From Blastocladiella emersonii ATCC 22665 (lineage: Eukaryota > Fungi > Blastocladiomycota), in NCBI GenBank assembly GCA_025594325.1, contig JANHCV010000002.1, positions 1,984,001 through 2,048,000 of the forward strand: 64,000 bases of DNA. Reading direction: 5' to 3'. The notes beneath the pieces were generated by a model. That model was given only the letters and a program-made list of their open reading frames with translations. It searched no databases and was not told the DNA's origin. This document shows, in pieces, positions 178 through 53,163 of this stretch (positions are counted from its first letter, which is position 1; each line of letters opens with the position of its first letter). The position numbers were made by a program, and so were the translations under genes.

Positions 178-3037
178 TCAGCGATTGAGCAACGGAGCGT
201 ACTATGCACAGCGAATGTGCGCGACGACTCGATCTCGACTAACGCATCGATCTTCCGCCAAGAAAGCACTCAACGATGATGGCGTTCGCGTCGCACGCTA
301 TGATCCAGCTTGAAAGCTCGAGCGAGCTCGCCTCCTTTGGCGCGGAACAACATATAGCGACGCCTGGCGGGCGCAAAGCGGGTGTAGTAGCGGTAGCAGC
401 GGCCAAGAAGAGCGAGTGCGCCCACACAAGGGGAAGAACGAGAACACAAATAGCATCGCCCCGAGCTGGGGTCCTTCACAATGGCAGGTACTGCAAGCCG
501 TGGCGACGTGAAAGCATCCCACAACATGCTACTCCACTCAGCGAGCTCGCCTAAGCAGCACTTGTGCAGTAGCAAGAGCAGAGTGCAAAAGCGGTGCCGG
601 CGGAACACTCAAGTCAACGGCCGAGTCGAGCACAGCACGTCGCGGTGCGAGCGCCACCCAAAGGCGCCGAGGTGGGATAGGACCGGCGTGTCGTCGATTT
701 CATGATTTATGGAACCCATTGCATAGAGTAAGTGAGCTTCATTGAGTGGGGGTGCATACGGGAGGGGTGCAGAGCGGAAGCGAGAGCCGAAGCGAAGTGG
801 CGCAACGCGACACGGGGAGTGATGTCATTGAGAAAAGTTTGACTGTAACGTGACGAGCGTTAGCCAGAAAATCGCGGTCACTATAGCTTGGGCAAAGCCC
901 CGCACTGTCTCAAGCCTCGCCCAAATCCATGGTTGAAGAAAAACGACGTGTCACTTATTGACTGCCCCCGCAAAGGACCGCTACGCTTTAAAGTTGTTCA
1001 GAAGGTTAAGCAAAGTCATCGTTAATTCATCATCAGCCGAGCTACACGCCATCCTTGGATGCAGCCGATGCCGCCACCGTGTCCACCTCATCAACCGCCG
1101 CTGTCGGTTCAGCTCTGTCCTTGGTTGCCGCTGGCTGGTTGGAGGACCCGCCAATGGACGTTGCAAAACCAGAGAGGTTTTCCTGATTCCCGCTCGCCGT
1201 CGCCGATGTGCGAGCCGTCGTGGCAGAAAGGGCAAATGCGGAAAAGTCGAAAGCGGACGGACGAGAAGAGCGATGCGCCATGGGTCTGGGCCTGCGTAGC
1301 GCGGGATTGGTAGCAGATGCCGCAGCGAATGACGCCATGGTCGCGGGCCCAGCACCTCGGGTCGACTTGACGAAGCGACGAGCGGGACGCAGAACCGGCT
1401 TGCGCGGGTCATGCGTGCGCTGGAGCGCCGGAGTGGTGGTGACCTCGGGCTCAGCGGCGACGGCAGTTACCGCAGTGATCGCTGCAACTGACTCGTTCGC
1501 CGCGGAGGAAGTATCGAGAATTGGCTGATTGCTATCGTGGCGCGACCACAGCAGGTCCATAGACTGGCTCGACACGAGGTGGCACGGCAGCGCGTTCCAA
1601 GCAAGCGGCGCGCCGTGCGTGCAAAGGGTAGCGATGATGGTGTCGAGCAAGTCGATGGTCAAGTTCAGATAGCGGTCAAGCTCTTGAGCGAGGCGCAACA
1701 GGATTTACTTGGGCGGCACCACGACAGGTATCGGCTCGGACGGCGTAGAATCGCGAGAAGCAAAGTCAAAGCTGAAAGCAGATGCCGAGGGGGCAGCGGG
1801 CAGGGTCGTCGTCGCGGAACTCTTCTTGGCCATGAACTGAACCGCAGGCGAGCGAGCTGCTTCGTTGCGACTCTGCAGCGCCCAGAGCAAGTATAAGGCA
1901 AGCTGCAAGGGCGTGATCCGGCACTCGTGCATTCCTCCAATACCAGTCGCGGCTTTTTGGACACAAGTTGTTGTGGCTGTAGCCGTAGCCTTGGACTGAT
2001 CCGGTGCGAGCACGCTTGGACACCAGCAATGATCATGCTTGCCAATACACGGGCTCGCACCGTTTTCAAGAAGCAGAGCGACCATGTCCGGATCACCATT
2101 GAGAATTGCCTGTGCGAGCGGCAAGCGCTGGACAAGCAAGCGACAACTCAGAAGGTCACTGATGGCGCGGTTCCCACTAACGTGCAAAAGGTGATTGAGG
2201 CCGATGTTTGGAAGAGCGCTGTGACATAGAAGCAAGTGCGCCATAACGTAATTGTGGCGTGCGACAGCGATGAAGAGTGGATTGGCGAGAGACGTAAAGG
2301 ATGGGTTGGTCAGGTCAATGTCGCCAAAGCACTCGCAGCGCGGGCCTGGTCGCGTTGGCTCACTGGAAGCGGTCGCCATGTTGAGAATTGGATTGGCAAC
2401 GAGCCGGGTCGACATGACCTACATAACCGCTTTGTCAACACCGCCACACGACTCACGGAACAGATATCCAAAGCATACCTGGTGCGTAGCATCCACGGCG
2501 GAGCCGCGCTGGCCAACAGGTCGGTTGACCTTGGACGCTCGCACAACATGCGCGAGGAGGGCCTCAAGCTGGCCAACATCGCCCTTGATCGCGACATGGA
2601 TCAGGAGAGACGTCATGGTCTTAAACGAGACGTACAAGCCGCGGGTAACCAGGTCCACAATGGCTGGGCGCTCGATCCCGGGTGCGTACATAGCGAAATT
2701 GAGCGGGTACTCCCCATTCACGTCGCGCGAATTGGAGCGCGCGCCACCGGTGAGCATCTCGGAAAGCAGTGGTTCCCACTCGCCAGCCTTGCTGGGGCGG
2801 CCGAGCGGAAGGTGGAGTGGCGTGCTTCCAAAGAGCCTCAGGGGCACATAGGGCTGTACGTGAGCCGTCGCGTTCCACGGAATTGGCACGTCAGAACCGT
2901 GGCGCGCCCGCAGTGCCTCCAAAATCACCGCAACGAATGCGTCGCCTCGCACGACAGCGCGGCAAAGCGCGTAGTAAGCGCTGTCACTGGATTGGTCGGC
3001 CGTGGAAGCATCGTTGGAAACAGGGCATCCAAGCATC

Positions 3038-4294
3038 CACAGCAGCAAACCGCGCATTTCTTAGAGCGAGAACACAGGCAAAAGCAGGCACTTTTTGAAC
3101 AGGAAGAAGTTCTTATTTTTCTTAGCCCTTGGCAACGCCGCCATCCGGTGCCGCGAGCGGGCGATTCCGCCGCCAGCTCGCGCGCGCGCGAGATTAGGTC
3201 AGTCATGAGGATCCGAAACATGATGATCGCGGATCGATCGCGCGCACCGGGTCGCGCTTCCGCTGCTGCACCACTTGCGCGGGTAGGGTCCCTCCTCGAG
3301 CAGGGCCACCTGCCCGCACGCGCGCGCACCCCGCCCACCCCGCCGCCCGCGACCCGCACAGCCAGCGGCAGCGACCCGCACACGCAACGGCGGCGGCTGC
3401 CCCAAAGATGGCGCGCCTTGCGCGAGCGGGCCGCTCGCGCGGTTGTTGAGGACGACGGCGGCGATGATCGCGACCTGGACCAGGACGTGTTGGTGCGGAC
3501 GGCGTGCTAGAGGAAGATGGGCGAGGAGAGCGGTGAGTCGGCGATCCAAAGAGCGAGCTTGCGCAAGTAGATGGGGACGTATGTCAAGGATCACAAGCGG
3601 GTCAAGCGAGCTGGGACAGACAAGCGACGTGTCGCGGCGCGGCAGCCATCTACACGCAGAGGAGAACGCGATCCGTTAGCCGGTGGTCGTGGCGAGCGAG
3701 CGGTCAGCGGCGGGGCAGCGTACTGTGAAGAACGCCTGGCGTGAGCGCGCACGGTTGCAAGGGAGTCCTGCGGCGACGTCTACATGGTTGGTGGTCAGCA
3801 CACATGGCCGCCGTTTGGGACTCCATGAGGGCATGTACCACTCGAGCATCGTGGTGGGCGAGGGCGAGGTGAAGAGCGCGAGATGGGTGAGGGCTGCAGT
3901 CGGCTTTTATGTCCGTGGCCAGCGACCGAGGCAGGCAGCGGGGCGCGGTGGGGCGCGGCGACCACCGCGGCCGTGCGCACGGATTTCGCAAAGGACCGGC
4001 GAAGGACCCTGGGCAAGCGGGCCGTGTTGCGTCATCGTGACGTGAAGGAGCAGGGCGCCCGAAGTCGCGCGCGCGTTCGCGCTCAAGCTGCCGCCGCGCC
4101 AGCCCGCGGGCGTTTCAGGCCGCGCCGCCTCGCGCAATTCACGCGCGAGGCCGCCGCTGCGCACGCTAGGCACCTCAAAGGATATGGGCGGCCTTTCTCC
4201 GCCGCACGCGCCGCGGCGGCAGCGCTTCGCCCAGGCAGCTCCCCCTCAGTTTTCTTAAGATTCTTAGCTAAGGAAAGGGCCATCTGCTGCTGTG
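3038..4294. mobile_element. Non-autonomous CACTA/CMC-like DNA transposon (1257 bp)
   Basis: Terminal inverted repeats CACAGCAGCA (3038-3047) and TGCTGCTGTG (4285-4294). 3-bp TSD ATC at 3035-3037 and 4295-4297. Subterminal TTCTTAG motifs at 3058, 3119 and 4261. Excision restores the host reading frame. No transposase recognised inside. Confidence 0.8.
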
Positions 4295-5306
4295 ATCGCC
4301 AAGTGAGAGAAGTCCGGGATCGTCAGTGGAGCGCCAAACTCGATGGCAAGCGTGCGGACGAGGTCGGGCGAGCCGCGATCGATTGCGCATAGCAGATACG
4401 AGCAAAAGTTTTCCGAGAGGTAGTGCTCTGCGGTTCTTTGGAAGTTCCTGCACTTGTGTCCAAAAGCGATGCCGCACGCGTGGAATGCCGGAACGAGCAG
4501 CCATACGAGGTCTGGGCGGTCCAAGTCAACGGCGTAGTCGAGGGCTGCTGTCGAGTACTTGGGATTGTTAGGGTCCATTGGGATTTGAAACAGTTCGAGT
4601 ACTCGGCGGACAAGCTTGTAGTTTCCACGCCGAACAGTGACAACAAGAGAGTCGGGGCACGAATTGAACCATGCCAGGTGCAAGTGAGGGATGAAGGCAC
4701 TTGCAGCGGATGCAACAGCCTGCTTGGTGAAGAGCCAGTCAAGAACGTCGAGCGCGCCATGATGAACAGCGAGAGCGACAAGAACGCTTGCAGCGTCGCC
4801 GTGAAGCGCAGAGTCTTCGGGAAGAAGCTTCACGCCCAGCTTGTTGATAAGGAAGCGGAGGACATCCAAGGACCGCGACTTGATAGCCAAGTGAGCGAGC
4901 GTACGGTGCAGTTGAGTCTGATACTTGAAAATTGTGCTGTTGGCGAGCTTGGCGGCGCCGACGACTTTGCATTCGCCCACAAGTGCTCAAAGAATGCCAA
5001 CGTTAGCGTACATGGCGGCATGGTGCATGGCGTTGGTGAGCCGCAATCCCGGAGCGCCCAAGACCCGAGCAAGGCGCAAAGGTGTGGCACCAACCTTGAG
5101 GAGAACTCGAGCCAACTCGATTTGGCCGGCGCAGACAGCGTGAAATAAGGCGAAATTCAAGTCAACAACATACTGTTGCCGTTGCCATTGCCGTGTTTTG
5201 GGCTTGGGGTTGGGCTTGGGAATAAGCTTGAGCATCTCGCGGAGCTTTGGGATGTTACCCAATGCAGCAAATCCACAGAGAGCTCCGTCGCGATCCATGA
5301 TCAAAA

Positions 5307-7502
5307 CTAGGTGTGTGTGCTGCGCACACACTTGGGTCTCAGCTGTAGCTTTACTTGGCTTCTTGAGACTGTTTCAGTTGGTGAAAGTGAAGTAGTTTAT
5401 CAATTCTCAATCCTGCTCAGCAGGGACAGTCGCTCCATGTCCTTCGCCACGTGCTGTAATGCCTTCTGCACAAGAACCCGACTGTTGAACCGGATGATGA
5501 GGATGTCCTCGGTCCTGCGCGCTTGAGCGCCGGACTTGCCCTTGACGGCCGACGTGCAGGTACGCTTGGTGGGCGAGGCCGGCGGGGTCTTGACTGTCTT
5601 GTTCTTGTCGCAGCCCTTGGCCTTGGTGGCCATCTTGCGCGCGCGGCTTGACAACGACAACGGGCCCGACTTGCACTCGCTCTCCTCCTTGTTGGCGTCA
5701 ACCTCCTCATCGGCCTCTGAGTCGACAACGATCTTGGTGATGTTCTTGTTCTTGGTCACGGCGGACAATGACGCGGGAACCACGGTCATGTTGGACTCGC
5801 TGCAGACGTTGTCCCACTCCTGCAGGTTGATGTTGAGCTCCTGGACAACGGCCAACGCCGCGGGTCCCAACGGCGTCGTGGCGCTGCCGGACGTGGTGCT
5901 GCCCAACGTGGTGCTGCCCAACGGCGCGTTGACGGACGCCAAGGTGGAAGTCGGCGAGCGGGTGGTGCACGCGGCCATGAGCGGGACAAGCGCAGCGGGC
6001 GCGGCCGCAGCGCTGGGAACCATCTTGGTGGGCGACAAGGGACCGGCCGTGAACATGGGCGGACTGTTGGGGCCCTGCAAAGGAGGCGGAGCTGTCGCAG
6101 TGGCGACCGACCGCATCTTGGTGATGAAGAAGGCGACAGACGAGGACATGGTGAAGTGGTCGTTGTTAGCTGCACCCTCAAAGCCGCAGAACAGCGGGCC
6201 AGAGACAAGCATGGTCTTGCCCGTCACCCACAGGCCCTTACTGCCATGCACACTGCACATCGATTTGTGAGTGAGAAGATTTGCAGAAGAGTCGAACAGC
6301 GGATCAGGACGTACCGGTTGGTCAGGATCACACAGCTCATGGACCACGTGGTTGCGTGGGGAGCAGGCTGGCCGCGGTGCGTTGGGTTGAGGAACTGCGA
6401 CGCGCCGTTCATGACAGTCATGGGCTGGGCCAGGTCAACCGAGGGTTGGCACATGGCGAACGTCTTGCCGCCGCCTAGAATCAGGAGACGTGTGTGAGCG
6501 CAGTTGGGGATCAAATGGAAGAGGAGGACCGAACCAAAGGTGAAGAGGCCGCTGATGATTGTGGGGTTGGGGTAGCGGATGGTGGGGTCGAGTTGACCAA
6601 GCAGGCTGGAAGCGATTGGGTAGAACACGAGCGTCTTGGGGGCGTCAAAGGTTGGAGCCATCATGGACGGGCACATGTCAATCTTGATGAAGCCGTTGGC
6701 CTTGTACAAGTTGCCAACGAGCAGGCTGCCGCGGTACGCGACAGCCGTGGCCTGCAGCAAGCCAAGCAGATCGGTCAAGGCGTTGGCGTTGATGAGGGGA
6801 ACACCAGGCGAGTAGCGGACGGGGATCTCGATGTTGAAGAAGAGGAAGGGGCTCGACGGCGGAGACGGAAACTCGGAGAGAACCGTGAAGCGCGACGAGC
6901 AGCGCAGCGAGAACGTGGGAGAGAAGTTCATGGTGTTGCGAGTGGTGGAGGAGAGCAAGGACTGTCAGCGGCGCCCCGCGCGCCTTTATATGCCGCCGCA
7001 TGACGGCCAGGCAGACGCCGAATCGCGAAGTATTATACGCTGCATGGAGTAGGAGTGGCGGGTAAAGAGCTGGTCAGCACAGGAGGTCTCAAAGAGCGTC
7101 GACGAGCAGCGGCAAGCGCGAGCGAGCGGGCGTGGAGTGGGAGAGCTTCCGAGGGCGCGAAAATGCAGCCAGGCAGGATTGATGTCAGGTCACGTGATGC
7201 TGAACAGTCAGTTTCGAGCGAGGTCCGTCTCGTCGCGCCTGCGCACGGGAACCGCTGCACAGGACCTCGCTCCCCTCGAAGTGAACAGCCTCGAACTGTT
7301 GGGGACTAGGCAAAGCACAGTCCAGATTTACGTTGGAGGGGTCGGAATGAAGTGAAAGCGAAAAACAACGGAACTCGTCGCGCGACGAAAATCGAAAACG
7401 GTCACTGAGCCACTCATGTGACCACAAGAGCAAGGTTGATGTGCCTGATAGGTTTCAATTGCTCCCACAGAAACTCAGCTTCGCTAAAGCTACAGCTGAG
7501 AA
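5307..7502 (-). mobile_element. Helitron2/Helentron-like non-autonomous element (~2.2 kb) with cargo gene
   Basis: Asymmetric 16-bp inverted repeat CTCAGCTGTAGCTTTA (5338-5353) / TAAAGCTACAGCTGAG (7485-7500). 3' hairpin GTGTGTGC-tgc-GCACACAC (5313-5331) followed on the - strand by CTAG (5307-5310). 5' mini-hairpin CTCAGCT..AGCTGAG (7474-7500). Inserted in a T-run (G^TTTTG); removal restores the F-V-L-I codons of copy A. Confidence 0.75.
5400..6931 (-). CDS. Unknown ~489-aa protein carried inside the Helitron2-like element (beta-rich N-terminus, low-complexity S/T/P/K tail)
   Basis: Exons 6931-6315 and 6252-5400, joined by a 62-nt GTACGT..CAG intron that links ORFs 6224..6958 and 5400..6347 in frame (TNR-VHGSKG). 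TATAAA on the - strand at 6985-6990. Confidence 0.7.
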
Positions 7503-8061
7503 CGAATAGCTCCTTGAGAGGGAACTCGTCCACAGCGTCGCGACCAGCACGCGAGAGTGCGCGTAGCGGCGCGCAGCCTTTGGCGCCAAGGTACCGCAGA
7601 CAGAGTGTGCGCCACACGGGGGTGACACGGACGAGGTCAATGAAGCAAGAAGTCGAGCGTGGCGCCAATTCGTCTCCAGCCCAACCGGGCTCCAGGTGAA
7701 GTCCATTTGAGTTCATGGCGGCAGTGGAGCTCAATGCGAGCAGTCTTCAAGTGCGAGGGTGGGCTTAGACGGCGATGGACAGAGACGTTCGCGAGGGAAA
7801 CGAACTCGGTGCCCTGCGCCCTGCGCCCTGCGCCCTGCGAGATCGCCATGGGAACCGCTTCAACGCGTCGCCCAAGCTATCACGTGAGTGGCGCAACGCG
7901 TCCCGCGTTGAAACGCTTCCGGGTGATGTGGCGCGCAGCACTGTACGCGGGGTCGCAAGTGACAGATGTGTAAAGGAGACTACGAAGGTACGCTGCCGTC
8001 TGACCTCATTGAGGAGCATGTAAAGCAAAGTCATGAGCGAATTGTCATTACAACAACCGAG

Positions 8062-11000
8062 TTACAAACCACCCAGGAACGCGCCCGACGCCCACGTCGT
8101 GGCGGCCTCACCAATCGCCGATGCCGTTCCCGAATCACCGTGAGCCGCCGTTGGGCCCCGGAACGCCGAATTGAAAAGCTCAGTCAACTCCAACACAGTG
8201 ATCGCGGCCCCGCGCGCAGTAGAGGGAGCTGCGACGGTCGGCGGCGTGGTGAAGGCGGAGTGGTTGGTGGGGGATGGGCGAGGAAGGTGTGCCACAGGCG
8301 CAGCAGCAGCGACCGCGGGGTCAGTAGGTGCTGCCGCCTCGAACGACACCTTGTTCATCAGCGCGGGACCGTGCACTAGCTTGTCAGGGCGACGAGAGGG
8401 GCGCAAAAGCGGCTTGCGGCGAAGGTCGCGTTCGCGTTCGAGCTCCGGGACCTTGATGGTCTGGGGCTCGGACACGACCGCCGTCGGTGCGGCGATCTCG
8501 ACGACGGTCTCGGTCACTGCCAAGCCGAGAATCGGCTGGGTGGGATCGTGGCGCGACCACAGCAGGTCCATGGACTGGCTCGACACGAGGTGGCACGGAA
8601 GCGCGTTCCACACGAGCGGCGCGCCGCGCACGTGTAGGGTAGTGATGATGATGTTGAGCGAGTCAAGGGTCAGGCACGGGTAGCGATCGAGCTCGCGCTG
8701 GAAGCGTGGTTGAAGGCTCTTGGGCGGGACGACGTTGAGAAACTGCGAGACATCACAAGAAGGTAAGTCGAAGCCGGAAGTAAGCATTGAGGGATCAGCA
8801 AGCAGGTTCGACGCTTGAGCATTCTTGACGCGCTGTAGCAGCGCCCAGCGCAGGTACATGGCAAGCTGCAGGGGCGTGATACGGCACTTGGGCAATGCAC
8901 TGTCTCCGCAAGCAGCACCGTGGGTACTGCTGGTCGCGGCCGTGACTGGGCTCGTGGGACGGCGTGAAGCGAGCATGGTAGGACACCAGCGGAGATCGTG
9001 CTCGCCAATGAACGGGCTCGCGCAATTCGCGAGAAGCAGTGCAACCATCTCCGGATCGCCATTGATAATCGCCTGCGCGAGCGGGGACCGCTGGACAAGC
9101 GACCGATGACGCAATGGTCCATTGAGCGTGTAGGTGGGGTTGGCGTCGAGGAGGTACTCGAGTCCAACGTTTGGAAGGGCGCCGTGTCCAAGCAGGAGAC
9201 GCACTGTCGCAATATCGCGGCGTGCGACAGCAATGAACAGCGGGTTGGCCAGCGACGCTAAGTCGGGGTCGGTCAGATCGACGTCGCCATAGCTTGCACG
9301 GCGCGAAAGGTGTCCGTTGGGCGAGCTGGAAGCAATTGTGGCGTCAAAGATCGGATGGTGGAGAGGCCGGTTTGACACAATCTACATGACCGCTTCGTCA
9401 GCACTGCCACCGATTGATCGCGGCGAAACAAACGAGCCCGCGAAACGTACCTGGTAAGAAACATCCATAGCGGTACCGCTGCGCTGGCTGACAGGTCGGT
9501 CGGCGTCCAAAGCACGCGCAACGTGCTGAAGCAGCACTTCGAGGCGGCCAGTATCGCGATCAATCGCTGCATTGATGAGAAGAGACGCCATGGTCTTGAA
9601 TGACACGAACAAGCCACGAGAAAGAAGATTGACGATGGCGGGATGCTTCTCCCCAACCACCCGCATGCCACAGTTGAGCGGGTACCGATCGTGGCTGTCG
9701 CGCAGATCGGAGCGCGCGCCCCTGGCCAGCATCTCGGTGAGCAGCGGGTCCCATCTGCCAGCAGTCTCGGCTCGGGAAAGCAAGATGTGTAGCGGCGACT
9801 GACCATGCAGCTGCAAATGCACGGCCGGACGGAGACTAGCCGTCGCGTTCCATGGAATCGAGACGTCAGAGCCATGGCGCGCCCGCAGCGCCTCGAGAAA
9901 AGTCGCAAAAAACGAGTCTCCTCGAGCGACCGCGCGACACAGTGCGTAGTAGACGCCGCCGCAAGACTCGTCGGCGGGCGAGGTGTTGTTCGAGATTGGG
10001 CAACTGGGGACCGGAGAATGGAGGAATCCGGGAATCGTCAGCGGAGCACCAAACTCGAGGGCAAGCGTGCAAACGAGCTCGATCGACCCATGGTCGATTG
10101 CGCATAGCAGGTACGAGGAAAACTTGGACGCAGAGTAATTTTTGGACCGACCGGAGCGCGTGCACTTGTGCCCGACGGCGAGGCCGCACGCCCGAAAAGC
10201 TGGTACGAGAAGGCGCACCAGGTCGACGCGGTCCGCATCAACAGCGTAGTCGAGTGCAACAGTTGCATAGTCTTGGTCGCCCAAACGCATTCGCGGGCTG
10301 AAGTGGTCGAGGACGCGACGGACCATGTCGTAGTTGCCGCTTCGAACTACAAGGGCAAGTATATTGGGACACCCGTCGAACCAATCTGCGCAGTAATAAC
10401 TCGGAATCACAGCAATTGCTACGGACGCGGCGTCGGAATGCTTCAACAGCGAGTCAAGAATGTTGGGCGCGTCGTGATTGATGGCGAAAGCAAGGAGGAC
10501 AGTTGCAAAGTCGCTGTAAGGAGTCGCATCCGCGGGGAGAAGCCGGGCGCCCGTCTCCTTGGCGAGGAAACGGACCACTGCAGAGGACCGCGAAGCGAGG
10601 GCCGATTGGATGAGCGAAAACCGCACTTGAGGTTTGGGCTCAAAGAAACTGAGGATTGGCACTTGAGGTTCCGCCTCAACAAAAATCGTATTTTCGGCAA
10701 GCTCGGCTACGCGGTCAACTCCGTGCGCACTTACGAGCATTCGGAGCATGTCCACGTTCCCGCGCGCAGCAGCAAGGTGCAGAGCATTGATTAGCCGCGA
10801 CCCATCGTTGCGAGAGAGCGGACCAGTTTGCACTGGTGTGGCACCTGCGTCGAGAAGAACGCGTGCCGCCTCGAGTTGATCGTAGCGAACGGCATAAATG
10901 AGGGCGGTGTCCAAGTCAAGAGAGTGGCCGTCCTGCGCGCTGCGCAGCTACACGAGGTCGAGCATTGAGCGAAGCTTGTGAATGTCGCCCGAGGCCGCGA

Positions 11001-11250
11001 AGCCGCAAAGGACTTCGTGTTGATCTTCCATTGAGACGTATAGCTCGCGGAGGGGAATCGAGTCCACGGCGTCGCGACCAGCACGCGAAAGTGCGCGCAG
11101 TGACGCGCACTCTTTGGCGCCGAGGTACCGCAGGCAGAGTGTGCGCCACACTGGGGACAAGTGGACGAGCTCGACAAGCGAAACGGCAGAAGCACGCGTC
11201 GATGCACCCGCGGTCTTGTCGGGTCTCGGGGATAGTTCATTTGAGTTCAT
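8062..11250 (-). pseudogene. F-box-like/ankyrin family copy B, full length with a single in-frame TAG
   Basis: ATG 11250 (MNSNEL..SLVELVHLSPVWRTLCLRYL). TAG at 10948-10950 is in frame with ORF 9382..10914. Intron 9382-9450 (GTACGT..TAG). Last exon 9381-8062. Ankyrin motifs TALIYAVRYDQLEAARVLLDAGA and NALHLAAARGNVDMLRMLV. Confidence 0.8.
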
Positions 11251-11772
11251 GGTGGCAGTGGAGGTCTAATGCGAGAAGTCTTTGAGTGCGAGGGGTAGTC
11301 TAGGGCGATAGTGAATGGAGGGCAAGACGGTAGCGTGCCGAGTGCAGCAGCGATCATGACCGGCGCTTTCACGGGCGACGTGGGAACTGCTGTGACGCGC
11401 CGCGCGAAACATCACGTGTGTGGCGCAACGCGTTGGATTTTTGGAGGACACGCGGACGAAGTAAATTTATATATACGCTCTCAGATAACATCGTATGGTC
11501 AAAATTTGAAGGGAAGGAGAGGGACAGTATGGCCTCGGGTCCTCGGTCGCAGTCACCACGTGTCAGGTCTGGAACCCGCCTTTCTTGACCGCCGTTTACT
11601 TTGCCCTCAATTCACCTTTCCGACTGTCCCCCCAGGCCGAGGCTTGTGCCCGGGCGGTGTCATCATGTGAGCGGCGCTGGGGGGAAAACCCGCACCGCAT
11701 TGCACAAGGAATCGGCTCACGTGGTGGCATTTCAGCCACACAGTGGGGGCGGTCGGAAAGGTCTATTGCCGT

Positions 11773-31060: not shown

Positions 31061-31250
31061 GCCGTCGCGGCGGCTTACCGAACCCGTGCGAGTCTCCGCT
31101 GCGTGCTCGGAAGTAAACTTTTTCGTATCCCTTAAATGTATCTGGCACGCTTCCGATAGACCTTGCTCGAGTTGACCATCGGGGGAGGGGCGGGTTGAGC
31201 AACTGTGAGACGTCCTTCGCGTGAAGGATCGTGCGACTGGTCGACGGCGA

Positions 31251-32844: not shown

Positions 32845-33130
32845 TGTTGAGAAGACGGGAGGAAAGCGAGAGGGAGGTGATGGGCGGGGTCGCAGGTGAG
32901 CAACAAGCACCCCACACATCCGGTCCTCGCGACCAGTCACACTATCGAGATGTTGACATGACAAGGAAACAATTGCATGGAGTTTCATGTGGACTAGATC
33001 AAGACGTCGTGACGAGCGGGGGAAAAAGAGTCGGGGCAAGCTCGGCTGGCTGCACTTCCGAGCACTGTGAAATCGTGGCCGCCTCGCGGGCAGCTCTCTC
33101 TCCCCACACGCATGTATTCTCCACATCACC

Positions 33131-38900: not shown

Positions 38901-39030
38901 CACTTTCGCCGCACCATCCGTCACTGCGTCGTTCGAGTGGCCGTTGGTGGGAGCGGGCGCATCTGGTTTTGGAATCTTCCGCGGGGCCGCCAACGCGTGG
39001 GCATCCGCCACGACCAAGGAGAGCGAATAG
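35949..39030 (+). CDS. F-box-like/ankyrin family copy E, apparently intact, ~1006 aa
   Basis: Exons 35949-37718 and 37780-39030. 61-nt intron GTACGC..GCTAAC..TAG joins ORFs 35949..37892 and 37792..39030 in frame. Confidence 0.85.
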
Positions 39031-42358: not shown

Positions 42359-42725
42359 CCATGAATGAGAGCGTGGCGGGTGCTGGTTGTTGTGGGAGTA
42401 TGAATATGCATTTGCTTTCAATGACGAAAGTTCTTTCGGTAAGGGTGAACATGGGCCGTCTCTTTCAATGCCGATGAACGACGCGTGCCCCGCTTCGACC
42501 CCTGCTCGAAGAGTCCGAAGTCGAAGACCTCCTCCCTCGGACGAACGAAAATGATTCATTTAATACCTAAAACTATATTGCATCAAGTTTCATTCTGGCC
42601 AGGACGCGAGGCGAGGCAGCTGTGTTGTCCCGTGCTGACAGGAGTGTCACGGCGTGAAGGCGCGTGCCGCTCTCGCAAACCGTTCCCCCTCCCCCAACGC
42701 GTTGGCCCCGCCCTCTTCCGCAACC

Positions 42726-44716
42726 ATGGAATCGATGAAGCCGATGCAATCCAATGAATTCGATCCGCTCTTGAGACTGTCGCCGACACGCGCGGCCGTT
42801 CCGCGTGCTGCGACCCTCGCCGATCTCGCCCGCGTCGCGCTGGTTTAGTGCCTTCTATCTCTGCGGTTCCTCGCGCTCAAAAACTGTATGATCCTTCGCG
42901 CACTCTCACGCGTCTTCCGTGATGCCGTCGACTACCTCCCGCCCGAGCGGATTTGCGTGACAGCCGACGACCGCGCGCGTGCGCTGCGCCGGTTTGCAGT
43001 GTCGGGTAACACAACCATGCTTCGCGCTCTCCTTGCTACTGTTCGCTCGCCTGACGTGCTGCCGACTCCTTACGGTCTCACCGAGCCGGCGCTGATCCAC
43101 GCCGTGCGCGCCGACCAGGTCGAGACGGCGCGCATCCTTATTGCGGCCGGCGCCAGCCCTGACGTGCCTCCTCGCAGGTACTGGATCGACGACGCGCGCA
43201 AGGTCATCCCCCTGCATATCGCCGTGATGCGGGGCAACCTCGGCATGCTTCGCGCGCTCGTCCATACCGCGGACACCAACCGCATGGCGTTCCTCGTCAA
43301 CCATGCAGTTCGCGACACTACTACCCGGTGGCCCGCTCGCTCGTTCATTCGGCAATCGAGTCGCGCTCGCTTACCCTGCTGCGCGTGCTCATCGAAGAGA
43401 TGGGTGCGCGGTTTCTTCCGACCGACCCGGCTCAACACGCGGACGCGGCGGCTGTACTCGTTGCGCTTGGGATCCACCACGACGCCCCCGACATTTCCGA
43501 CTGGCTCATGAGCTACATTGACCCCCCAACAACCATGTCGATCCCTCAGCGCATTACTTCCTGGTTCGACGGGAGCAATGCCTTTCTCGCTCTCGCCGTG
43601 CGCCGTGGTGACGCTGACTTTGTTCGCCGGGTGCTCACAAGGTTTGAACTTGATCATTCCAAGACTGCCACCTGCTCCCGCACGTCGCGCGTGCGTCACA
43701 GGTCGGCCGGCCCGCTGGGCAGCGAGGCACGTCCATGGATGTTTCGCTAGACGTACGTTTGTACTTGGGCTGAGCCTCGTCCCAGCCGGGTTACTCACGC
43801 GAGCGAGACGTGCGAATAGTTTGTATCGACTGTGCTTCACGCCTCCCCGGACAGCAACTACACCGCATTCACCAGCAGGATCCAAGAACTTCGCGACCTT
43901 GGCGAAGTGGATTTGACCGACCCGCTCTTTGGTCTGCTCTCGAACCCGCTGTTCTTTGCCGTGGTGCGCCGCGAGTACTCGACCGTTCGTCGCCTGCTTC
44001 GCCACGGTGCTTCGCCTCACGTCGGACTCGCTCATACCGTTTGCGACCCGGTGCTTCGCCAGCCGTATGTGCATCGCTCTCCGCTCGCACAAGCCGTCCT
44101 TCAGGGCGATCCGGACATGGTCGCGCTACTTTTTGACGAAGGTGGCGCGGATCCGCAGTTTGGCGAGCATGAAAGGCGCCGGTGTGACGAGCCGTGATTC
44201 ACTCCACGCTCAACGTCAACAACGGTGACCGTCCGCCAACCGGTACGAAATTTCGCGGCTGTCGGATTACTCCCTTGCAGCTCGCTCTGTACCTCCACTG
44301 GACGCTTCAGATGGTTACAGACAAGGCCCGCTTCGGGGCGGTTAACGAGTGTATGCCTCTCACATTGCACACGCAGTCGCCGACCGCCCTTGATTGCTCA
44401 CCTCTCCTAATCGCGCTGCCGTCAACCAGCGCGCCGTCGAACAGCTCGCAGCAGCACTCGACCGCTTTGCCCACGCTGTTAGCGCCCGAGTCTGTGTCGT
44501 TCGTGATCCCGATGCCGCGTCTCATTCGAGAACTTGAACGGTACCCGGACTTGACTATCGACTCGCTCAACACCATCATCAACGCGCTCAAATCGCATGA
44601 CGCGCCGCTTGTACCCCCCCACGTCATCGTGCCACCTCGCGAGCAGCGAGACCATGGACATCATGTGGTCGCGCCGTACTCCCACTCAGTCCATGTCGTC
44701 TGCTGGGACTCAGTAG
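42726..44716 (+). pseudogene. F-box-like/ankyrin family copy G: nonsense codon, frameshifts and internal deletion
   Basis: ATG 42726. TAG at 42846-42848 where paralogs have Trp. Frameshift near 43330. Several hundred bp of the ankyrin region are missing before the intron donor near 43753. Further frameshifts near 44195 and 44620. Confidence 0.85.
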
Positions 44717-45027
44717 CTTTAACGGCAGCAGCCGCCGTTAGGAGCACGGTTGGAGCCCCAGCCAGCGCCCGGGGCGCAGAAGCGGCCCGGGCAGCAATTG
44801 CAGACGAAAATATATCTACGAGTATCGTCTGCAAGTGTGTGGTCTTGGTCAGTGTTCGAGCGACATCGAGAACGCGTCCATGTCGCGTTGCGCCACACAC
44901 TGTTTCAGCCCGCCGCTCCCACGCGAGCGTGGGCGAGTGGCGTTGGCCGAGTGGAGCCGAGCCGGCCCCGGCGCCTTTCGCGACCTCGCTCTCCCCGCAC
45001 CCCCCGCTCCTGATCAGCACCGTCGTC

Positions 45028-48000
45028 ATGGACTCGATGCAACGAATGAAATCTGAGACCGATCAGCTGCCGGAACCTTCGCCGCGGCACGAAACGCCCC
45101 CGGCCCTCTCGCTCGTCGATTTCGCCCAAGTAGCTCTCGTTTGGCGCCCTCTGTGCTTGCGGTACGTCAATCCCAAGGACTGCGCTGCGCTCCGCGCCGT
45201 CTCTCGCGCTACGCACGATGCCATCGACGCTCTTCCCGTTGGTAAACTTATTACGTCGGGCTCGGACCGCGCGCACGCGCTGAGTGGCGCTGCGGCGACG
45301 GGCAACGTCGTGCTCCTCCGCAAGCTGCTTGCCATCGTGCCGTCTCCTAATGTTCGGTCCGGTGGATGCGAATCGCATCTTCCGGCTCTGATCCACGCCG
45401 TGCGTAACGACCAGGTGGAGGCGGCGCGGATCCTGGTCGAGGCGGGTGCCAAGCCTGCGCGGTCCATTCGTGTGTCTTGGGGGACCAGCCCGCGCTCGAC
45501 CATTGCCATTCACGTCGCCGCTATGCGCGGGAACGTCGCCATGCTGCGCGTGCTTGTCGAAACGAGCGGCGTCAAGTGTACCGCGTCCTTAGCCAATCAC
45601 TCAATCCTTGAACCTTCCTCCAAGCTGCACCGCACGCTTGTCCACTCGGCCATCGAATCGGGGTCCGTGGAGCTGCTTCGCGTTCTCGTTGAGGAGATGG
45701 GCGCCAAATTGCTTCCTGTCCATCCAGCCGAGCACAACGACGCCTCAGCTGTTCTCATTGCGCTCGCAGTCAAACACGACACGCCGGGTGTCCTGGATTG
45801 GCTCTTGGCCGACTGCGCGCTGCCGACAGCGGCGATCCAGCTCCCTTTGTACCATCGCTACGCTTGGTTCGGCGGTAACGACATCTTTACGCTGGCCGTG
45901 CGCCGCGGCAACCTTGAGGTTGTCGGCCGCTTGCTTGAAACGGACTTGCCGCTCTCGCACGAGACTGATCCCGATGCAACCAAGCACATCACCACGGTAC
46001 TCGACATTGCTGTCGACGCGAACCGTCCCGATCTCGTGGGGGTGCTCGTGCCGGCCTTCCGCGCCCGCGGCCTTGCTGCGGGCCACACGTGCGCGCGCGT
46101 CACCAAGGCTGGACTCAATCGTCGGTCGTACTTGGACTGCGCCATCGCCAATGGCTCGTCCGACCTCATCCGTGCACTTGCCATCGATTTCAACGCGCCA
46201 CTGACTTTCCCCGACCTCACGTTTGCACCGGAGCCTGGGTGCCCAGTCGCCAACGACTTTTCGCTCGCTGACGAGTCTCGCGATGGTGCCTATTTTGCGC
46301 TGCGCAGCGCGCTTACGCGAGGCGCTGCGTTTGTCGAGCCGATCCTTGACGCGCTGCGTGCACGACACGGCGCCGACCTCTCGATCCTGTGGAAGGCGAC
46401 GTCCGAGCTTACCAGCTTCCAGCGCGACCAGTTCCGCGGCCGCACGCCGCTGCACTTCTTGTTCGGACTCGATTGAACTGCAGACGATTGGGAGCCGCTG
46501 CTTAGCGAGATGCTGTCGAGCGGTGCTCCAACCGACGTGCGCGACTTGGACGGTTTGTATCCGCTTGACGTAGCTATAAAATCAGTTGGGATCGACCACC
46601 CGGCTATTTTGGACTTGCTCAAGCGTAGCATGTGCGCGCCGTTTGGGACCATGGCGGCCCTCATCATTGTGGCCGCGATGAAAGGCGACATTGCTCGCCT
46701 CAAGGCCTTGCTTCCTTACGAATATACTGCGTCCAACATCGATCGGTCCGACCGTCAGTACGGCACGGCCATTGATTCCCACCTTCATGTACGCGATTTT
46801 GGAGATCCTGTGGCTGCATCATACTCACAATTACGGATGTGTAGGCTATTCCTACCTGGATCCACGCTCTCATTCCCAGTCAGCTCTCAATACTCGATGC
46901 CTCCGCTGATCCCGGTTCCAGCGAGCCCAGGTTGCCTGGCTTGAACCTTGACAGCCGCGGCGAGGTGGATCTGACGGACCCCTACTTCACGCTACTCGCC
47001 AACCCGCTGTTTATCGCAGTCGCGCGACGCGACCACGACACCGTGCGCTTTCTCCTTTGCCGCAAGGCGCTTCCCAATATTGGTCTTGATCACACGGCCA
47101 CGTATGCAAAGAATTTGGCGCACCGCTGGTCGTTCATTCAGCGCTCACCGCTTGCGCAAGCTATTCTCAACGGCGATGCGGTTATGGTCGCACTGCTGCT
47201 CGATGAGGGCCGCGCGAGCCCGTTCTTCGGCGAGCACGACATGGGGTGGTGTTGCGACCCCGCTATCCCGCACCAGTCCTCGTCCTCAACCCTGCGCGGT
47301 CGAGTTCGCCAGGCTTCCGAGTCGCGCGAGTGCCGGATCACGCCCTTGCAGCTTGCCGTGTATCTCCGCTGGGCGATTCTGGAGCGCGGCAAGGCCAGTG
47401 TGCTCGACTCGCCCTTGACTGCTTCCACGGTCAAGAGCTCTGACGCTTCGCCGGCTTCGCCATCCCTGGCATCACCGCCCGCGTTCAGTTTCGACTTTTC
47501 TTCCTCCGCCACGGCGTCGATGGGCGATCCCTTCCCAAGTTCCTGCTCGGCTAGATCAAGATCACCACGTTCTTGCTCTTCGTTCGCGACGGACTTGACC
47601 GCCGTCCCACCCTCGTATCTCCAGGCGCGCTTCTGGCGTGAGCTCGACCGCTACCCGAGCCTAACTCTCGACTCGCTGGACGTAATCATCGCGAAACTTC
47701 ACGCGCACAACGCGCCGTTGGTGTGGTCTGCGCTCCCGGGCCAAAACGTGTGCTATCACTCCGCCAACCTCATGTGGGCGCCGCACGAACCGGAAAAGCC
47801 TCTCCCGATCTGCGACCGCAAATTGCTCACGGCTTCCTGCAGCCTCGCACTGACGGTCGAAACTTCAATATCACCTGTTGCAGTTATTCAGCTCAAGGCC
47901 GCGCTGCGCTCTGCAACGCCTTCTACCACCGATCCTTCCCCCGTGTTTACGCCGGCCAGAGTAGCTCGGTTGATGACGTCAGCGACGAGTGGGAGTCCGA

Positions 48001-48083
48001 AGTTTCCGTTCACCGTTCCGACCCGCTGGCCTCGTCCAGCTACGTTCGCCAGGGCACCCAACATGTGGGGATCGATGGCGTAG
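45028..48083 (+). pseudogene. F-box-like/ankyrin family copy H, full length with a single in-frame TGA
   Basis: ATG 45028. TGA at 46474-46476 is in frame with ORF 46510... Intron 46789-46844 (GTACGC..TAG). Last exon 46845-48083. Confidence 0.8.
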
Positions 48084-48477
48084 AAGCGGACCGAGGGATT
48101 ATATCGTTTACTTATGCATGGCAGTGATTTTCAACTCGTGCTGAGCGGGTTGACAGGCCTGCGAGAGGGAGACGCGTGCGCGACGCGCAACACGTGCTTC
48201 AAAGTAAGGGCCCGTTTGGTTCCGGGGTGAATCAGGTGGATCAATCGATTTTACACGGTCCGGTGTTCACCCAGCTGAAACGTGGCATTTTCACCCCGTC
48301 GTGTTCATCGCGGCGTTTGGTTCAACCCACGGGTGAGCTGAATGGAACCCTCGTCGCTGAATCGCCCGTCTGCTCGCCCCCGAAACCTTCAGGCTGTGCT
48401 CCCCGGCCTATATAAACGCCGTTTTCCTCCAAAGTAACTCGCTCTCTCTCCCCCGTCCTCCCTCAAAGCCGAAAAGA

Positions 48478-49607
48478 ATGGCTCCCCCGTCAAGCAAAAA
48501 GCGCGCTGGCCGTACGGCCATGTCCATCGAGGAGATCGTCAGGAACGTGCCCGAAATCCCGCCGCCGCCCGCCGATAGCGACGAGGATGCAGATGACGAC
48601 GCTGCTGGGAGCGACGGCAACGCTGCTGTCACGCCGACCAACCCGCTGCCGCCCGTGACCATCGCCAAGCCAAGCAAGCGCAAGGCCAGTGGCAGCAAGG
48701 CCAGCAGCGGCAAGGCCAGCGGCGGCAAGGCCACCTTCTGCTCCGCGTCGACCAACTTCCTCCTCGACCACTTCTGCAACCTCGCTGACGACGGCGTGCT
48801 CGGCGACAGCAACACGCTCAAGGCCCAGCACCGTGTGTCGATTGCCCAGGCCCTGTCGGACGAGTTCAACATGCAGTTTACGGCGGAGCAGGTCAAGAAC
48901 CGCGTGACATACGTACGCTTTGTCTTGCGGACACGCGTCAACCGTAGCGCTAACAACGTCAGCGTTCGGCTCCAGCTTCGCACTTGTTTTCGCGCCGTAA
49001 AACGGCTTCTGTCGTACTCGGGCAACGGCTGCACCTGGAATGAGGGTGAGTGCACGGTCGACGTGCCAGAGGAGTTCTGGAACGATCTCTCGGTACGTTT
49101 GTTCAATATCGTTACGCGTCAACTCGCGGCGAGCTAACAGCGCCTGGCCTGCTTCAATTGTAGGCAGAGCTCAAGGAGGAGCTGACTGCGGGCTGCAAGC
49201 CCTTCCCGTACTACAAGAAGGCCAACATGCTGTGGGGCAGCTCGACCGCCACCGGCGAGTACTCGCACCTCGAGCAGGACGGCAAGGAGTCTGGTGCCGT
49301 GGAAGGTGTTGATGGTCAAGACGACGCGGCCCCCGCCAGCAAGCGCAGCCGCACTTCGGACAGCAGCTCGCGTCGCCTCTCGGACTCGGAATTCCTCATG
49401 GGCATCAAGGAGGTGTTCCAGAGCGTCGCGACCGCCGACTCCAAGCCCGTTCTGACCGCCGCACTTGAATGGGTCCAGGACGCGTACAATGACAATGAAG
49501 AGTACCAGATCGACGTCGCCACCCGCCTGACCGAGGATCAAACGCTTCGCGTCATGGCCGTGTCCGAATCGAAGCGCAAGCGCGTCCTCGAGTTTTTCAT
49601 TCAGTAG
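48478..49607 (+). CDS. Harbinger Myb/SANT-like DNA-binding protein, ~331 aa
   Basis: Exons 48478-48912, 48976-49092, 49164-49607 (GTACG..AG introns). FNMQFTAEQVKNR, SGNGCTWNE, KPFPYY motifs. TATAAA near 48409. Confidence 0.85.
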
Positions 49608-49920
49608 CTCTCTCGCACATGTCCCCCTCCCCTCGCGTTGCTTCCTGGCCTTGTTCTCGCCCATTTGTGTCCAATACATCTGGCTTTGTGTCCATCGTAT
49701 CTTCAATCGTTACCCTTCGCTCGAAAATGACGCGACTCGTTGAGAAACGCGTGGTTCTCAAAGTGTCTCGCACGTCACGTGATTGATCGACGCGTCCCCA
49801 CCGATGCGTTCTGACCTCAGCGACGCGTCAAATCATCTAGAATCGCTTATATAACATTATAGTACTTGACAAATCAGTATATTACAGCATGCATGCGGGT
49901 ACAACAATTATTTCGCGCCT

Positions 49921-51238
49921 TCAAAGACGGGTCCCACGAGCGGCCATGACGCGCCTGTACTCGGTCCAAAGAACATTTGCGATGCGGTTCCGAAGCGAGA
50001 TACCGCGCTGACGAGCTCCGTCCAGCGAGGCCTCGAGGACAGCGGCCTCGTCGTCCTCCTCGTTCTCGTCGTTCAGGGGCTCGCGCCCACGCACACGCGC
50101 CTCACGCGCCGCGTCCCGCGCACGCCGGAGCTCCGTCTCGGCGTCGCGAAAGAAGGCGTCGCCGCCTTGGTTCCACTTGTTGATCATGTTGTGCAGCGTG
50201 CAGAGCGCGTACACAAGCTTGACTTGAGTCTTGATTGGGTAGGCCGCGCCAATCGAGAGGACGCGGAACCGCTTCTTGAGCACGCCAAAGATATGCTCAA
50301 TGGAATTGCGGAGCGACGCGTGACGCAGATTGAAAAGCTCTTCGCTGTTCTCAACTCTACGTACGTTGGTGAAGCAGATGAGATGGCGCCAACGTGATGG
50401 TCATGGCAGTGAGAACGTACCCATCCTTGCCGCGGGCAAACTCGCGAAGATGATAGCGGGTACCGCTGAAGGGCACGATGATGGACGTGCGGTTTGCGTA
50501 GCCGCCGTCGGCGAGGTAGAAGCGGCCGGCGGGGATCTTGAACCCACGGGCGAAGGCGTCCAAGAGCACGCGCGAGTCGTGCGCCTTGCCCTCCCACCCT
50601 GCGAGAACGTAGGTGAAGTTCAAGTCAAAGTCGCAGGCAGCGAGGACATTTGAGGAGATGGTCCCCTTGCGGTTTCGGAACGAGTCGTGAAGCTTGGCGG
50701 GCACAACAAACGGGATGTGCGTTCCGTCAAGCGCGCCGACCGCGTTCTGGAACGGAGCGTATTTCGGGTCGTGGGCGATGCGCTCATGCACGGGCGTAGA
50801 ATCGGACGGCTGGACAATGAACTCGGGCATCAGGCGGTACAGAGCGTCGAGCACCTGCTTCAGAACCCTGGACGCGGTCTCGCCAGAGATTTGGAACCGC
50901 TCCCTGAGGTTGCGGTTGGTGCTGCCCTCGCCGGCCATGACAAGAAAAACCATGAAGCGCGCCTCGACGGACAGCTCGCGGCCGTCGGTGAGAAGGCCAC
51001 GGTCGCGGAACAGGCGGCAGATGGCCTTGAAGGTCTCGCGGGGCATACGGGCGATTTCCGAAAAACGCGTTTTGCTGTTGCACGTCAGCAGCTCTTGAAC
51101 CCACGACTCGCCAGAAAGCGTGGACGTGCGGATAGGCTCCCACGAGCGGCGCTCGTTGCGCGCAGCGAGACGTCGCAGGAGAGCGAGGGCGGCCGTGAGC
51201 ATGAGGCCGCGCAGCTTGCGGTTGTATCCCTTGCCCAT
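49921..51238 (-). CDS. Harbinger DDE transposase (DDE_Tnp_4-like), ~417 aa
   Basis: Exons 51238-50421 and 50356-49921. GALDGTHI, WEGKAHDSRV, YLADGGY, ELFNLRHASLRNSIEHIFGVLKKRF. No disabling mutation seen. Confidence 0.92.
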
Positions 51239-51724: not shown

Positions 51725-53163
51725 ATGAATCTTCCGTCCGCTTCGAGCGACGCCATGCACCCCGAGACGGAACCATCCATGCTAGCGTTGTCGCAGGAGC
51801 AGCTTGCCGCTCATCCGGCCGTTGCGCTTCTCGATTTCGCCCACATCCGTCCCGTGTGGCTCCGGCTATGTCTCCGCTACCTCGCACCGAAGGACCGCGC
51901 CGCCCTGGGCGCCATCTCGCGCGATGCGCTTGCCGCCATTGACGCCATTCCGGCCAAGCTGATATACGTTTCCGTCAACGAACGTCTACGTGCGCTGAGC
52001 CGTTTCGCAGCATCGGGCAACATCCCCATGCTCCGCACCCTGCTCGCCATGCTGCCATCGCCCAATGCCCGTCCGAACGCCATGTTCGAGCAGGTTCCAG
52101 CTCTGATCTACGCTGTGCGCAACGACCAGGTCGAGGCGGCGCGCATCTTGGTTGCAGCCGGTGCAAAACCTGAGCGCGGAACGCGGAACGGCGACCCGCG
52201 CTCAACGAACGCGTTGTTCATTGCCGTGGTGCGCGACAACGCGGCCATGCGCTGTGCGTGCTTTGCAGCGAGATGGGCGCGGAGCTCGACGGAAATCATG
52301 ATCTACTTACTTTCGCGGTGCTTATCGGCGAGGCTGACCTTGTCCGCGGTCTGCTCGCGACCGACCCGCAGGTCGTGCGGAACGGGACCCCGGCGCTTGA
52401 TCACGCCATGCACGCAGGTCGGCTCGATCTTGTGCGGCTACTTGTGCCCGCCTTCCGTGCACGCGGCCTTGACGCTGGTCACAAGGGCGCTTACCGCTCA
52501 CGCGATATCGAGGTCGAGCTCAAACGGGGGTCCTACTTGCTCCGCGCCATCCGACGCGGCTCGCCCGACCTCGTACGCGCGCTCGCTGTCGAGTTTGACG
52601 CACCTCTCACTCTTCCCGAAATTTCTCACACGCCCGTACCCGGGTGCCCTATCTCGAACAACACAACGATCGCCGATGCGTCGCACGATGGCGCGTACTA
52701 TGCGCTGTGCTGTGCCGCGTCGCGTGGAAGCGCATTCGTCGAGCCGATCCTTGATGCGCTGCGGGCAAGGCACGGCGCGGACGTGCAGATCCCGCGCGAG
52801 GCGACGCCCGAGCTCTCAGACGTGGTGCGCGGCCGGCTTCGCGGTCAGGCAGAGCTTGCCCTCCTGCTCGAACGCAGCGAGAGTACGCCAGCAGCGCCAG
52901 AGCCGGACTCGCATCTCTCGGAAAGTGCGACGGCGGAGTCTGAACCGGACCGGCTTCTCTTAGCAAGTTCGACGGCGGAACAAGAGCCGGACCGGCTTCT
53001 CTCAGCAAGTGCGACGGCGGAACCAGAGCCGGACCCTCTGCTCTCAGCAATTACGACAACGGTAGAAGCAGGGCCGCCTGTTTCCACCGCGAGCCGGCTT
53101 CGGTTTTGTTCATGGCGTTCGCTCTTCCCTTTCTGCGGCCCGTGGAAACGGGACGGGGAGTAG
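51725..53163 (+). pseudogene. F-box-like/ankyrin family copy I: internally deleted, frameshifted and 3'-truncated
   Basis: MNLPSAS..ALLDFAHIRPVWLRLCLRYL. Frame switch near 52255 into ORF 52258..53163. Homology ends in a tandem-repeat segment. Confidence 0.75.
52885..53055 (+). repeat. 39-bp coding tandem repeat (~4 units; AE.EPD.LL.AS.T)
   Basis: GCGACGGCGGA..GAGCCGGACC..CTTCTCTCAGCAAGT repeated. Confidence 0.8.

Follow-up and report, generated by a model that had tools for sequence, protein, structure and literature searches.

Decay of an Old Tandem Array of Long Ankyrin-Repeat Genes in Blastocladiella emersonii and the Possible F-Box Origin of Their N-Terminal Head

Described Receptors with F-Box or Ankyrin Domains

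The F-box proteins that act as receptors of the Skp1–cullin–F-box (SCF) ubiquitin ligases, such as Skp2, Cdc4/Fbxw7, and Grr1, carry an N-terminal three-helix head of ~45 residues directly before a long run of protein-binding repeats, which are usually leucine-rich repeats, WD40, or Kelch. The same layout is predicted for a family of paralogous genes that are clustered in a 64,000-nt stretch of the genome of the fungus Blastocladiella emersonii ATCC 22665 (C11:1,984,001–2,048,000, hereafter the window), with the difference that the repeats are ankyrin repeats and that docking on Skp1 is a prediction. The head of this family matches positions 12–41 of the F-box profile, including the invariant Ser, and largely keeps the hydrophobic spacing of helix 1; it differs from F-boxes in lacking the LPxE motif, in having Ala in place of the conserved Trp of helix 3, and in scoring at or below the gathering cut-off.

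The pairing of an F-box with ankyrin (ANK) repeats is known from intracellular bacteria and large DNA viruses, e.g. from Legionella AnkB and the ANK-PRANC proteins of poxviruses and Orientia. These proteins are short, with 2–10 repeats, and those of poxviruses and Orientia have the F-box-like module at the C-terminal end. The B. emersonii family has the same domain pair, an F-box-like part and an ankyrin target-binding part, but is encoded by nuclear genes with a fungal-type intron, and has ~15 repeats together with an additional C-terminal module and a tail that is disordered, and its sequence kinship with the bacterial and viral proteins is limited to generic ANK similarity. A long ankyrin solenoid also forms the substrate part of the cullin-RING ligase (CRL) receptors FEM1A/B/C (CRL2) and ASB (CRL5), and FEM1B and FEM1C are among the Foldseek matches of the family's first exon. 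However, FEM1 and ASB dock by a C-terminal VHL or SOCS box, neither of which was found in a Pfam scan of the open reading frames (ORFs) and exons of the family, and the structural likeness is generic to ankyrin proteins. With the diversifying F-box arrays of nematodes and plants the family shares abundant pseudogenes, but recent duplicates are absent, the closest pair being 56% identical.

The published B. emersonii assembly comprises 34.27 Mb in 21 contigs, and the genome paper (PMC9730499) is silent on both ankyrin and F-box families; no relevant literature tying together Blastocladiomycota, ankyrin repeats, and F-boxes was found. The genome scans reported here cover the 21-contig, 32.65-Mb assembly of strain ATCC 22665. 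What they reveal is an undescribed, lineage-specific adaptor family in decay, and one of a familiar kind; a preliminary description of the window had rightly pointed to an undescribed paralog family with an F-box-like head, many ankyrin repeats, and many dead copies. The explanation that we prefer, and to which we give an even chance, is that the cluster is an old, mostly decayed tandem expansion of a single gene of the B. emersonii lineage, whose head would be a divergent F-box and whose product would be an ankyrin-type substrate receptor of the SCF ligase.

Organization of the Cluster

Nine paralogs of a protein of ~1,000 aa were located in the window by tblastn with the two exons of copy E, with E-values to 1e-155, and these matches are far past chance. 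Three copies (C1–C3) lie on the minus strand within 1–15.5 kb and six (D–I) on the plus strand within 33–53 kb, as follows.

1042..7719, minus strand: C1, a pseudogene with exon 1 broken by two transposon insertions (~5296-7476 and 3031-4317); in-frame stops at 4989 and 1707 and a kept intron at 2419-2478 (from the tblastn chain and junction sequence)
8062..11265, minus strand: C2, full length, with one in-frame stop at 10950; intron 9382-9450; exon 2 of 439 aa
14060..15484, minus strand: C3, a truncated pseudogene covering E residues 30-506, with two frameshifts, a stop at 14617, and no exon 2
33122..35597, plus strand: D, with exon 1 open but Thr in the position of the start Met of the family and no ATG until after the head; intron 34913-34970; exon 2 shortened to 208 aa
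35949..39030, plus strand: E, intact; exon 1 35949-37718 (590 aa), intron 37719-37779, exon 2 37780-39030 (416 aa); head at residues 28-75 (36030-36173)
39718..42358, plus strand: F, open; exon 1 39718-41514 (599 aa), intron 41515-41575, exon 2 41576-42358 (260 aa)
42723..44610, plus strand: G, a pseudogene with a stop at 42846 in the head, E residues ~309-563 deleted, and a frameshift in exon 2; intron kept at 43753-43819
45019..48083, plus strand: H, full length, with one stop at 46474; intron 46789-46844; exon 2 of 412 aa
51734..53163, plus strand: I, a pseudogene that retains the head and first repeats, has an internal deletion and a frameshift near 52280-52360, and ends before the intron

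The nine-copy count of the preliminary description thus holds for the window but not for the cluster, as four further copies within 10 kb to the left of the window bring the total to 13 in two divergent arrays. Similarly, of the two copies that had been taken as intact, E and F are both open but F lacks the C-terminal disordered tail, which leaves E as the only wholly intact copy in the window. Among the left-flank copies, L6c is intact and L6a has a single stop. Across the 13 clustered copies, three are open (E, F, L6c), three carry a single stop (H, C2, L6a), and seven are fragmented, truncated, or devoid of a start codon. Exon 2 of L6a additionally contains an insertion of ~320 nt (L006:6999-7354; C11:1980999-1981354) across which the frame stays open, giving an exon of 525 aa; this insertion may be an in-frame miniature inverted-repeat transposable element.

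A profile of the head alone, searched over the genome, returned exactly 16 loci at E <= 0.01, namely the 13 clustered copies and three others designated L2, L3, and L4. On this result, a relationship of the cluster to other F-box-like/ankyrin/LRR families of the genome was rejected. L2 is an intact, founder-like dispersed copy ~790 kb distant on the same contig, and L3 (KAI9187965.1) and L4 are distant paralogs. In the public gene model of L2 (P0003 = KAI9187946.1; L002, C11:1192001-1200000), which is 1,690 aa long, the family unit is fused to an additional upstream stretch that begins like a signal peptide, resembles Kelch weakly, and contains a transmembrane segment; this arrangement could be either a mis-fusion in GC-rich DNA or a genuine receptor-like architecture. 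Word-index searches of the annotated proteins in the 325–1,032 aa and 930–2,957 aa classes did not return E, F, or L6c; a search with exon 1 of E gave no match, and one with the family part of P0003 gave only P0003 itself. Because of these results, E, F, and L6c seem to be missing from the public annotation.

Architecture of the Encoded Protein

The two exons were searched and folded separately. The product is a soluble, long ankyrin solenoid with an N-terminal helical head, a C-terminal module, and a disordered tail. A short disordered N-terminus precedes the conserved head of ~45 aa, and the N-terminal motif that had been noticed in the paralogs is real, its alignment consensus being LLDLAHVxPVWRxLCLRYLxPKDCAxLRAxSRAARAAIDALP. 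The ankyrin repeats, which had likewise been noticed beforehand, are strongly confirmed by Pfam and by AlphaFold2 with Foldseek. There are ~15 repeats per protein, with exon 1 accounting for ~12–13 helix pairs in the AlphaFold2 model and exon 2 adding 2–3. Six ORFs (E, D, F, H, C2, and exon 2 of G reading into H) match Ank_2 at 57–70 bits against a cut-off of 27.3, and copy I reaches 34.8 bits in its first ORF and 25.6 in its second; the Pfam ANK E-values range from 1e-15 to 1e-19. The exon 1 model is a long solenoid with a mean predicted local distance difference test score (pLDDT) of 74.8, and its best PDB matches in Foldseek are ankyrin-R/B and DARPin fusions (E 2e-11 for these) and FEM1.

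The exons are separated by a single phase-0 intron of 56–69 nt with a GTACG donor, a CTAAC- or CTGAC-like branch site, and a TAG acceptor. In agreement with the single site given in the preliminary description, the seven copies of the window that cover this site all have the intron directly after one shared codon, and it is present as well in three copies outside the window and in L3 and L4. Downstream of the repeats, the C-terminal region consists of a conserved helical module (RELDRYP...APL) and then a disordered tail with FxF and Trp motifs, of which the cluster copies retain FxFDFS motifs.

Relationship of the Head to F-Boxes

When 15 isolated heads were compared with all 24,736 Pfam models, PF00646 was matched by six of the 15 (best E 2.5e-4) and PF12937 by three, the remaining matches being two singletons with no other family recurring. 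Among whole exon 1 ORFs, a match to PF00646 / PF12937 is found in copy H alone (14.6 bits, E 0.032), the head of which gives the best F-box score in the window. In a six-frame scan of the genome with PF00646 (cut-off 20.5 bits), L6d, which lies outside the window (20.6 bits), L6a (19.5), and H (18.8) are listed amid bona fide F-boxes, all three aligning to positions 12–41 of the model, and the Catenaria homolog described below matches PF12937 in the same register (E 0.011). Alignment of the head profile by hhalign to a reference profile of 12 clear F-boxes from the same genome gave a score of 24.1 (P 8e-5) over 25 columns corresponding to helices 2–3, which rose to 25.8 (P 3.4e-5) upon addition of the Catenaria and Allomyces heads, with probabilities of 61–72% for the two head profiles. 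None of 300 column-shuffled F-box profiles reached 24.1 (mean 9.4, maximum 22.3). In the exon 1 AlphaFold2 model the head appears as three short helices (39–46, 51–58, and 62–68) in the register of F-box helices H1–H3. When the head is aligned in the F-box register, the V-[S/C]-[K/R] position is occupied by the invariant Ser, and helix 1 retains five of its six hydrophobic positions. All of the named ESM-Atlas clusters closest to the head are F-box clusters (top score 0.85), which is only a lead. The SCF machinery itself is well represented in the genome, as there are three Skp1 loci (C15:2012492-2012704, C1:792512-792658, and C1:3199651-3199794) and at least 47 and at least 51 loci matching the two F-box models.

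It has to be noted that a number of observations weigh against an F-box. The LPxE motif of helix 1 is absent, V/I-D/x-P/L-V-W standing in its place in all 17 heads, including those of Catenaria and Allomyces; only 25 of ~45 columns are aligned by hhalign, and helix 1 falls outside the alignment. Within the window, all copies stay below the Pfam gathering score, the genome scan with PF12937 recovers no copy, and the head profile in turn retrieves no canonical F-box from this genome. Searched against PDB sequences, the head profiles gave ankyrin matches and RelA/SpoT (E 6e-4) but no F-box; the RelA/SpoT match is due to chance, and the helix-turn-helix pattern of the head can arise by chance. As for structure, the pLDDT of the head is just 35–58 in the exon 1 model, and a model of the head alone (pLDDT 74.8) merges helices 2 and 3 and, compared with the PDB by Foldseek and VIA-align, matched no F-box and nothing above background (best Z 4.3).

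The F-box motif of the preliminary description therefore survives in part: PF00646 recurs, the hhalign P is ~1e-4, and the ESM neighbors are F-boxes, but LPxE is missing, gathering scores are essentially unreached, and there is no fold match. The head is most likely a highly divergent F-box, and its homology to F-boxes appears somewhat more probable than its absence; that the head actually docks on Skp1 has a lower likelihood than the homology. The F-box assignment is plausible but unproven, the support being consistent but weak.

Relatives in Other Fungi

In a profile search with exon 1 over 1.84 billion representative proteins, only four matches span both the head and the full length, i.e. 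the L2 and L3 models, Catenaria anguillulae ORZ34185.1, and Allomyces arbusculus KAJ3374242.1, and all others are generic ankyrin proteins whose matches start at profile position 53 or later, most at ~80. Because these four are the only head-spanning full-length matches among so many proteins, the broad family is, as judged from sequence, specific to Blastocladiomycota and conserved in three genera. No member of the narrower clade formed by L2 and the cluster was detected outside B. emersonii in the same search. L3, L4, ORZ34185.1, and KAJ3374242.1 resemble the cluster in the head motif, the ankyrin layout, the ANK module of the second exon, and a C-terminal module of the form '...L..II..L...APL', and the intron position is that of the cluster in L3 and L4, the two in which it was checked. 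These distant members are, however, only 25–31% identical, have long FxFG-like tails and a Cys-rich segment unlike the cluster, and are single or low-copy, forming a sister clade to L2 plus the cluster.

History, Selection, and Decay

The maximum-likelihood tree resolves two deep clades, one with Catenaria, Allomyces, L3, and L4, and the other with L2 and the 13 cluster copies. Within the latter, L2 is sister to a star-like radiation of the cluster copies, with end branches of 0.36–0.82 and supported sister pairs E–F, C1–C2, and H–L6d, with D–C3 grouping weakly (80/54). The founder of the expansion is thereby related to L2; because L2 is sister to all 13 copies, no direction of transfer is shown. 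A mirror-image (palindromic) origin of the two arrays was considered and rejected, as only the innermost pair D–C3 groups, weakly, and H pairs with the outermost left copy.

Clustered copies are 44–56% identical in protein sequence, and for every pair dS is 1.0–1.67 (saturated), dN 0.35–0.51, and dN/dS 0.24–0.42; these estimates come from eight sequences. Block-wise conservation of exon 1 is even (0.55 in the head and 0.51 in the remainder), so that, at this resolution, there is no sign of a well-conserved docking part next to a highly variable surface. The rapid turnover that had been suggested for the array is not borne out, as young duplicates are lacking, with dS >= 1 in all pairs, and the suggested diversifying recognition surfaces find no support in the low dN/dS, read with the saturation of dS in mind, or in the even conservation along the protein. 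A broadly conserved, low-copy family under purifying selection, which the preliminary description had named as the contrary picture, is partly what was found, in that the broader family occurs in three Blastocladiomycota genera and is mostly under purifying selection.

In a neutral simulation, ~4 stops are expected in exon 1 by 0.1 substitutions per site, whereas E, F, and L6c are open across 859–1,006 codons with ~0.4–0.55 substitutions per site on their end branches. Since neutral drift would have introduced that many stops so early, ORF-keeping selection must have acted nearly throughout the divergence of the open copies (E, F, L6c, and, for exon 1, D) and of the copies with a single stop (H, C2, L6a). 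Some deaths of copies are recent. With death in the array and no recent birth, the locus is an old array in staged decay rather than one of fast turnover.

Genomic Setting

The two arrays face away from a central block with a GC content of 0.67–0.69, which holds five housekeeping genes and is bracketed by an inverted repeat; the array DNA itself has a GC content of ~0.60 and contains several transposons. Every cluster copy, open or broken, has a GC content at third codon positions (GC3) of 0.65–0.72, compared with 0.90 in L2 and 0.78–0.98 in four neighboring genes. L4, an open distant paralog, lies in a similar low-GC region and has a GC3 as low as that of the cluster copies, and because of this the low GC3 of the cluster is read as a compartment effect and not as a sign of death. 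Repeat-induced point mutation as the source of the low GC and of the stops was ruled out, as TpA/ApT is ~0.5, CpA/TpG is not depleted, and CpG observed/expected exceeds 1.

More generally, two genome compartments can be distinguished: the arrays and their flanks (1-15500 and 33100-53200) have a GC content of 0.57–0.61 and a gene GC3 of ~0.65–0.72, as against 0.69–0.70 and 0.78–0.98 in the core genes (19881-31250; loci L001, L004, and L005 were also used in the comparison). In each arm of the inverted repeat, a part (18491-18881) resembles the Egh16-like gene at 54205-54595, with a similarity of 84%. The other features of the window are the following.

18367-19880 and 31251-32764: perfect inverted repeat (1,514 nt, 100%) flanking the 11.4-kb GC-rich housekeeping block that separates the arrays
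48408..51238: DNA transposon of Harbinger/PIF-like type that separates copy H from copy I and belongs to the transposon-rich surroundings, not to the family (Pfam)
48478-49137, plus strand: Myb/SANT-like ORF of this element (Pfam)
50357-51238, minus strand: DDE_Tnp_4 transposase ORF of this element (Pfam)
53509-55194: gene of the Egh16-like secreted 'virulence factor' family (Pfam E 2e-53), with a long Gly/Ala/Asn-rich low-complexity tail
58293-63268: Ty3/gypsy-type retrotransposon with gag and pol open (pol ORF of 1,286 aa) and a GC3 of 0.90, which resembles that of host core genes and differs from that of the ankyrin array

Proposed Mechanism and Alternative Explanations

If the preferred explanation is correct, the protein would be a substrate receptor, attached through its head to Skp1 of the SCF ubiquitin ligase, with its ankyrin groove binding a substrate and presenting it to the ligase and its tail motifs possibly recruiting further partners. 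The copies diverged for long under ORF-preserving selection in a GC-poorer, transposon-rich compartment, and those of the cluster are now dying singly, one after another. As far as a current function of the cluster copies is concerned, two findings count against this explanation, namely that the GC3 of the open copies equals that of the pseudogenes and that E, F, and L6c seem to be unannotated.

An alternative that is possible but clearly less probable is that the protein is an ankyrin scaffold with a family-specific helical cap or dimerization element as its head, functioning by way of its ankyrin groove and FxF/FG-like tail as a cytoplasmic or nuclear-pore-associated adaptor with no link to ubiquitination. 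The missing LPxE, in-window Pfam scores below gathering level, the lack of an F-box among PDB sequence and fold matches, a chance RelA/SpoT score close to the F-box scores, and the low AlphaFold2 confidence of the head would all be expected of such a cap, and the FxFG-like tails of L3, Catenaria, and Allomyces and the FxFDFS motifs of the cluster copies would suit an adaptor of this kind. What a scaffold does not account for is that F-box is the sole Pfam family matched repeatedly by the heads, that hhalign scores against the genome's own F-boxes lie far over those of shuffled controls, that the nearest ESM clusters are all F-box, and that an N-terminal head directly before a repeat domain is the canonical layout of F-box proteins. 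It is unlikely, on the other hand, that the whole cluster is a dead relic in which E, F, and L6c are pseudogenes that have not yet acquired a stop, with only L2 (and L3/L4) being functional. Such a relic would be consistent with the GC3 of these three copies (0.65–0.70), which is that of the broken copies and far under the 0.90 of L2, with their seeming absence from the public protein annotation, and with the shortened exon 2 of F and D; nevertheless, they have remained open well beyond the 0.1 substitutions per site at which ~4 exon 1 stops are expected, splice sites and branch-point-like motifs are preserved, and L4, with exon 1 open, shares the low GC3 in its low-GC region.

The array of fast-turnover, diversifying recognition or defence receptors, as in the F-box expansions of nematodes and plants, which had been put forward in the preliminary description, is in our estimate very improbable. 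A clustered tandem expansion that includes many pseudogenes and lies in a compartment poorer in GC and rich in transposons does bring such arrays to mind, as do the branches of the cluster copies, which are longer than that of L2. However, no recent duplicates exist, every pair being at dS >= 1 and 44–56% identity, pairwise dN/dS (0.24–0.42) and the even conservation (head 0.55, rest 0.51) count against diversification, the family has only 16 loci genome-wide, known defence domains are absent, and a function in defence or pathogen recognition finds no support. An extended version of the SCF receptor model can also be imagined, which we regard as a long shot. It would have a private Blastocladiomycota class of SCF receptors made of a non-canonical F-box without LP, ~15 ankyrin repeats arranged as a solenoid, and an FG/FxF tail. 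In B. emersonii this class would once have grown into the 13-gene array, perhaps in the course of an earlier conflict with some parasite or virus or of a developmental change in the zoospore cycle, and the array would now be in the process of being lost; the FG-like tail would link ligase targeting to nuclear-transport receptors.

Implications

In most respects the locus is ordinary. Repeat-protein adaptors often undergo lineage-specific expansion, and there is no indication of immunity in the data. The cluster nevertheless offers a clean case of a long-lived tandem array in staged decay, in which open, single-stop, transposon-hit, and fragment copies are found together, and it lies in a compartment that is rich in transposons and poorer in GC, within a genome that is elsewhere saturated in GC3. 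If the head does dock on Skp1, the family would represent a fungal F-box/ankyrin receptor family without the LP motif that is confined to an early-diverging phylum, and it would thus provide a data point on the limits of F-box drift and on lineage-specific ubiquitin-ligase specificity in zoosporic fungi.

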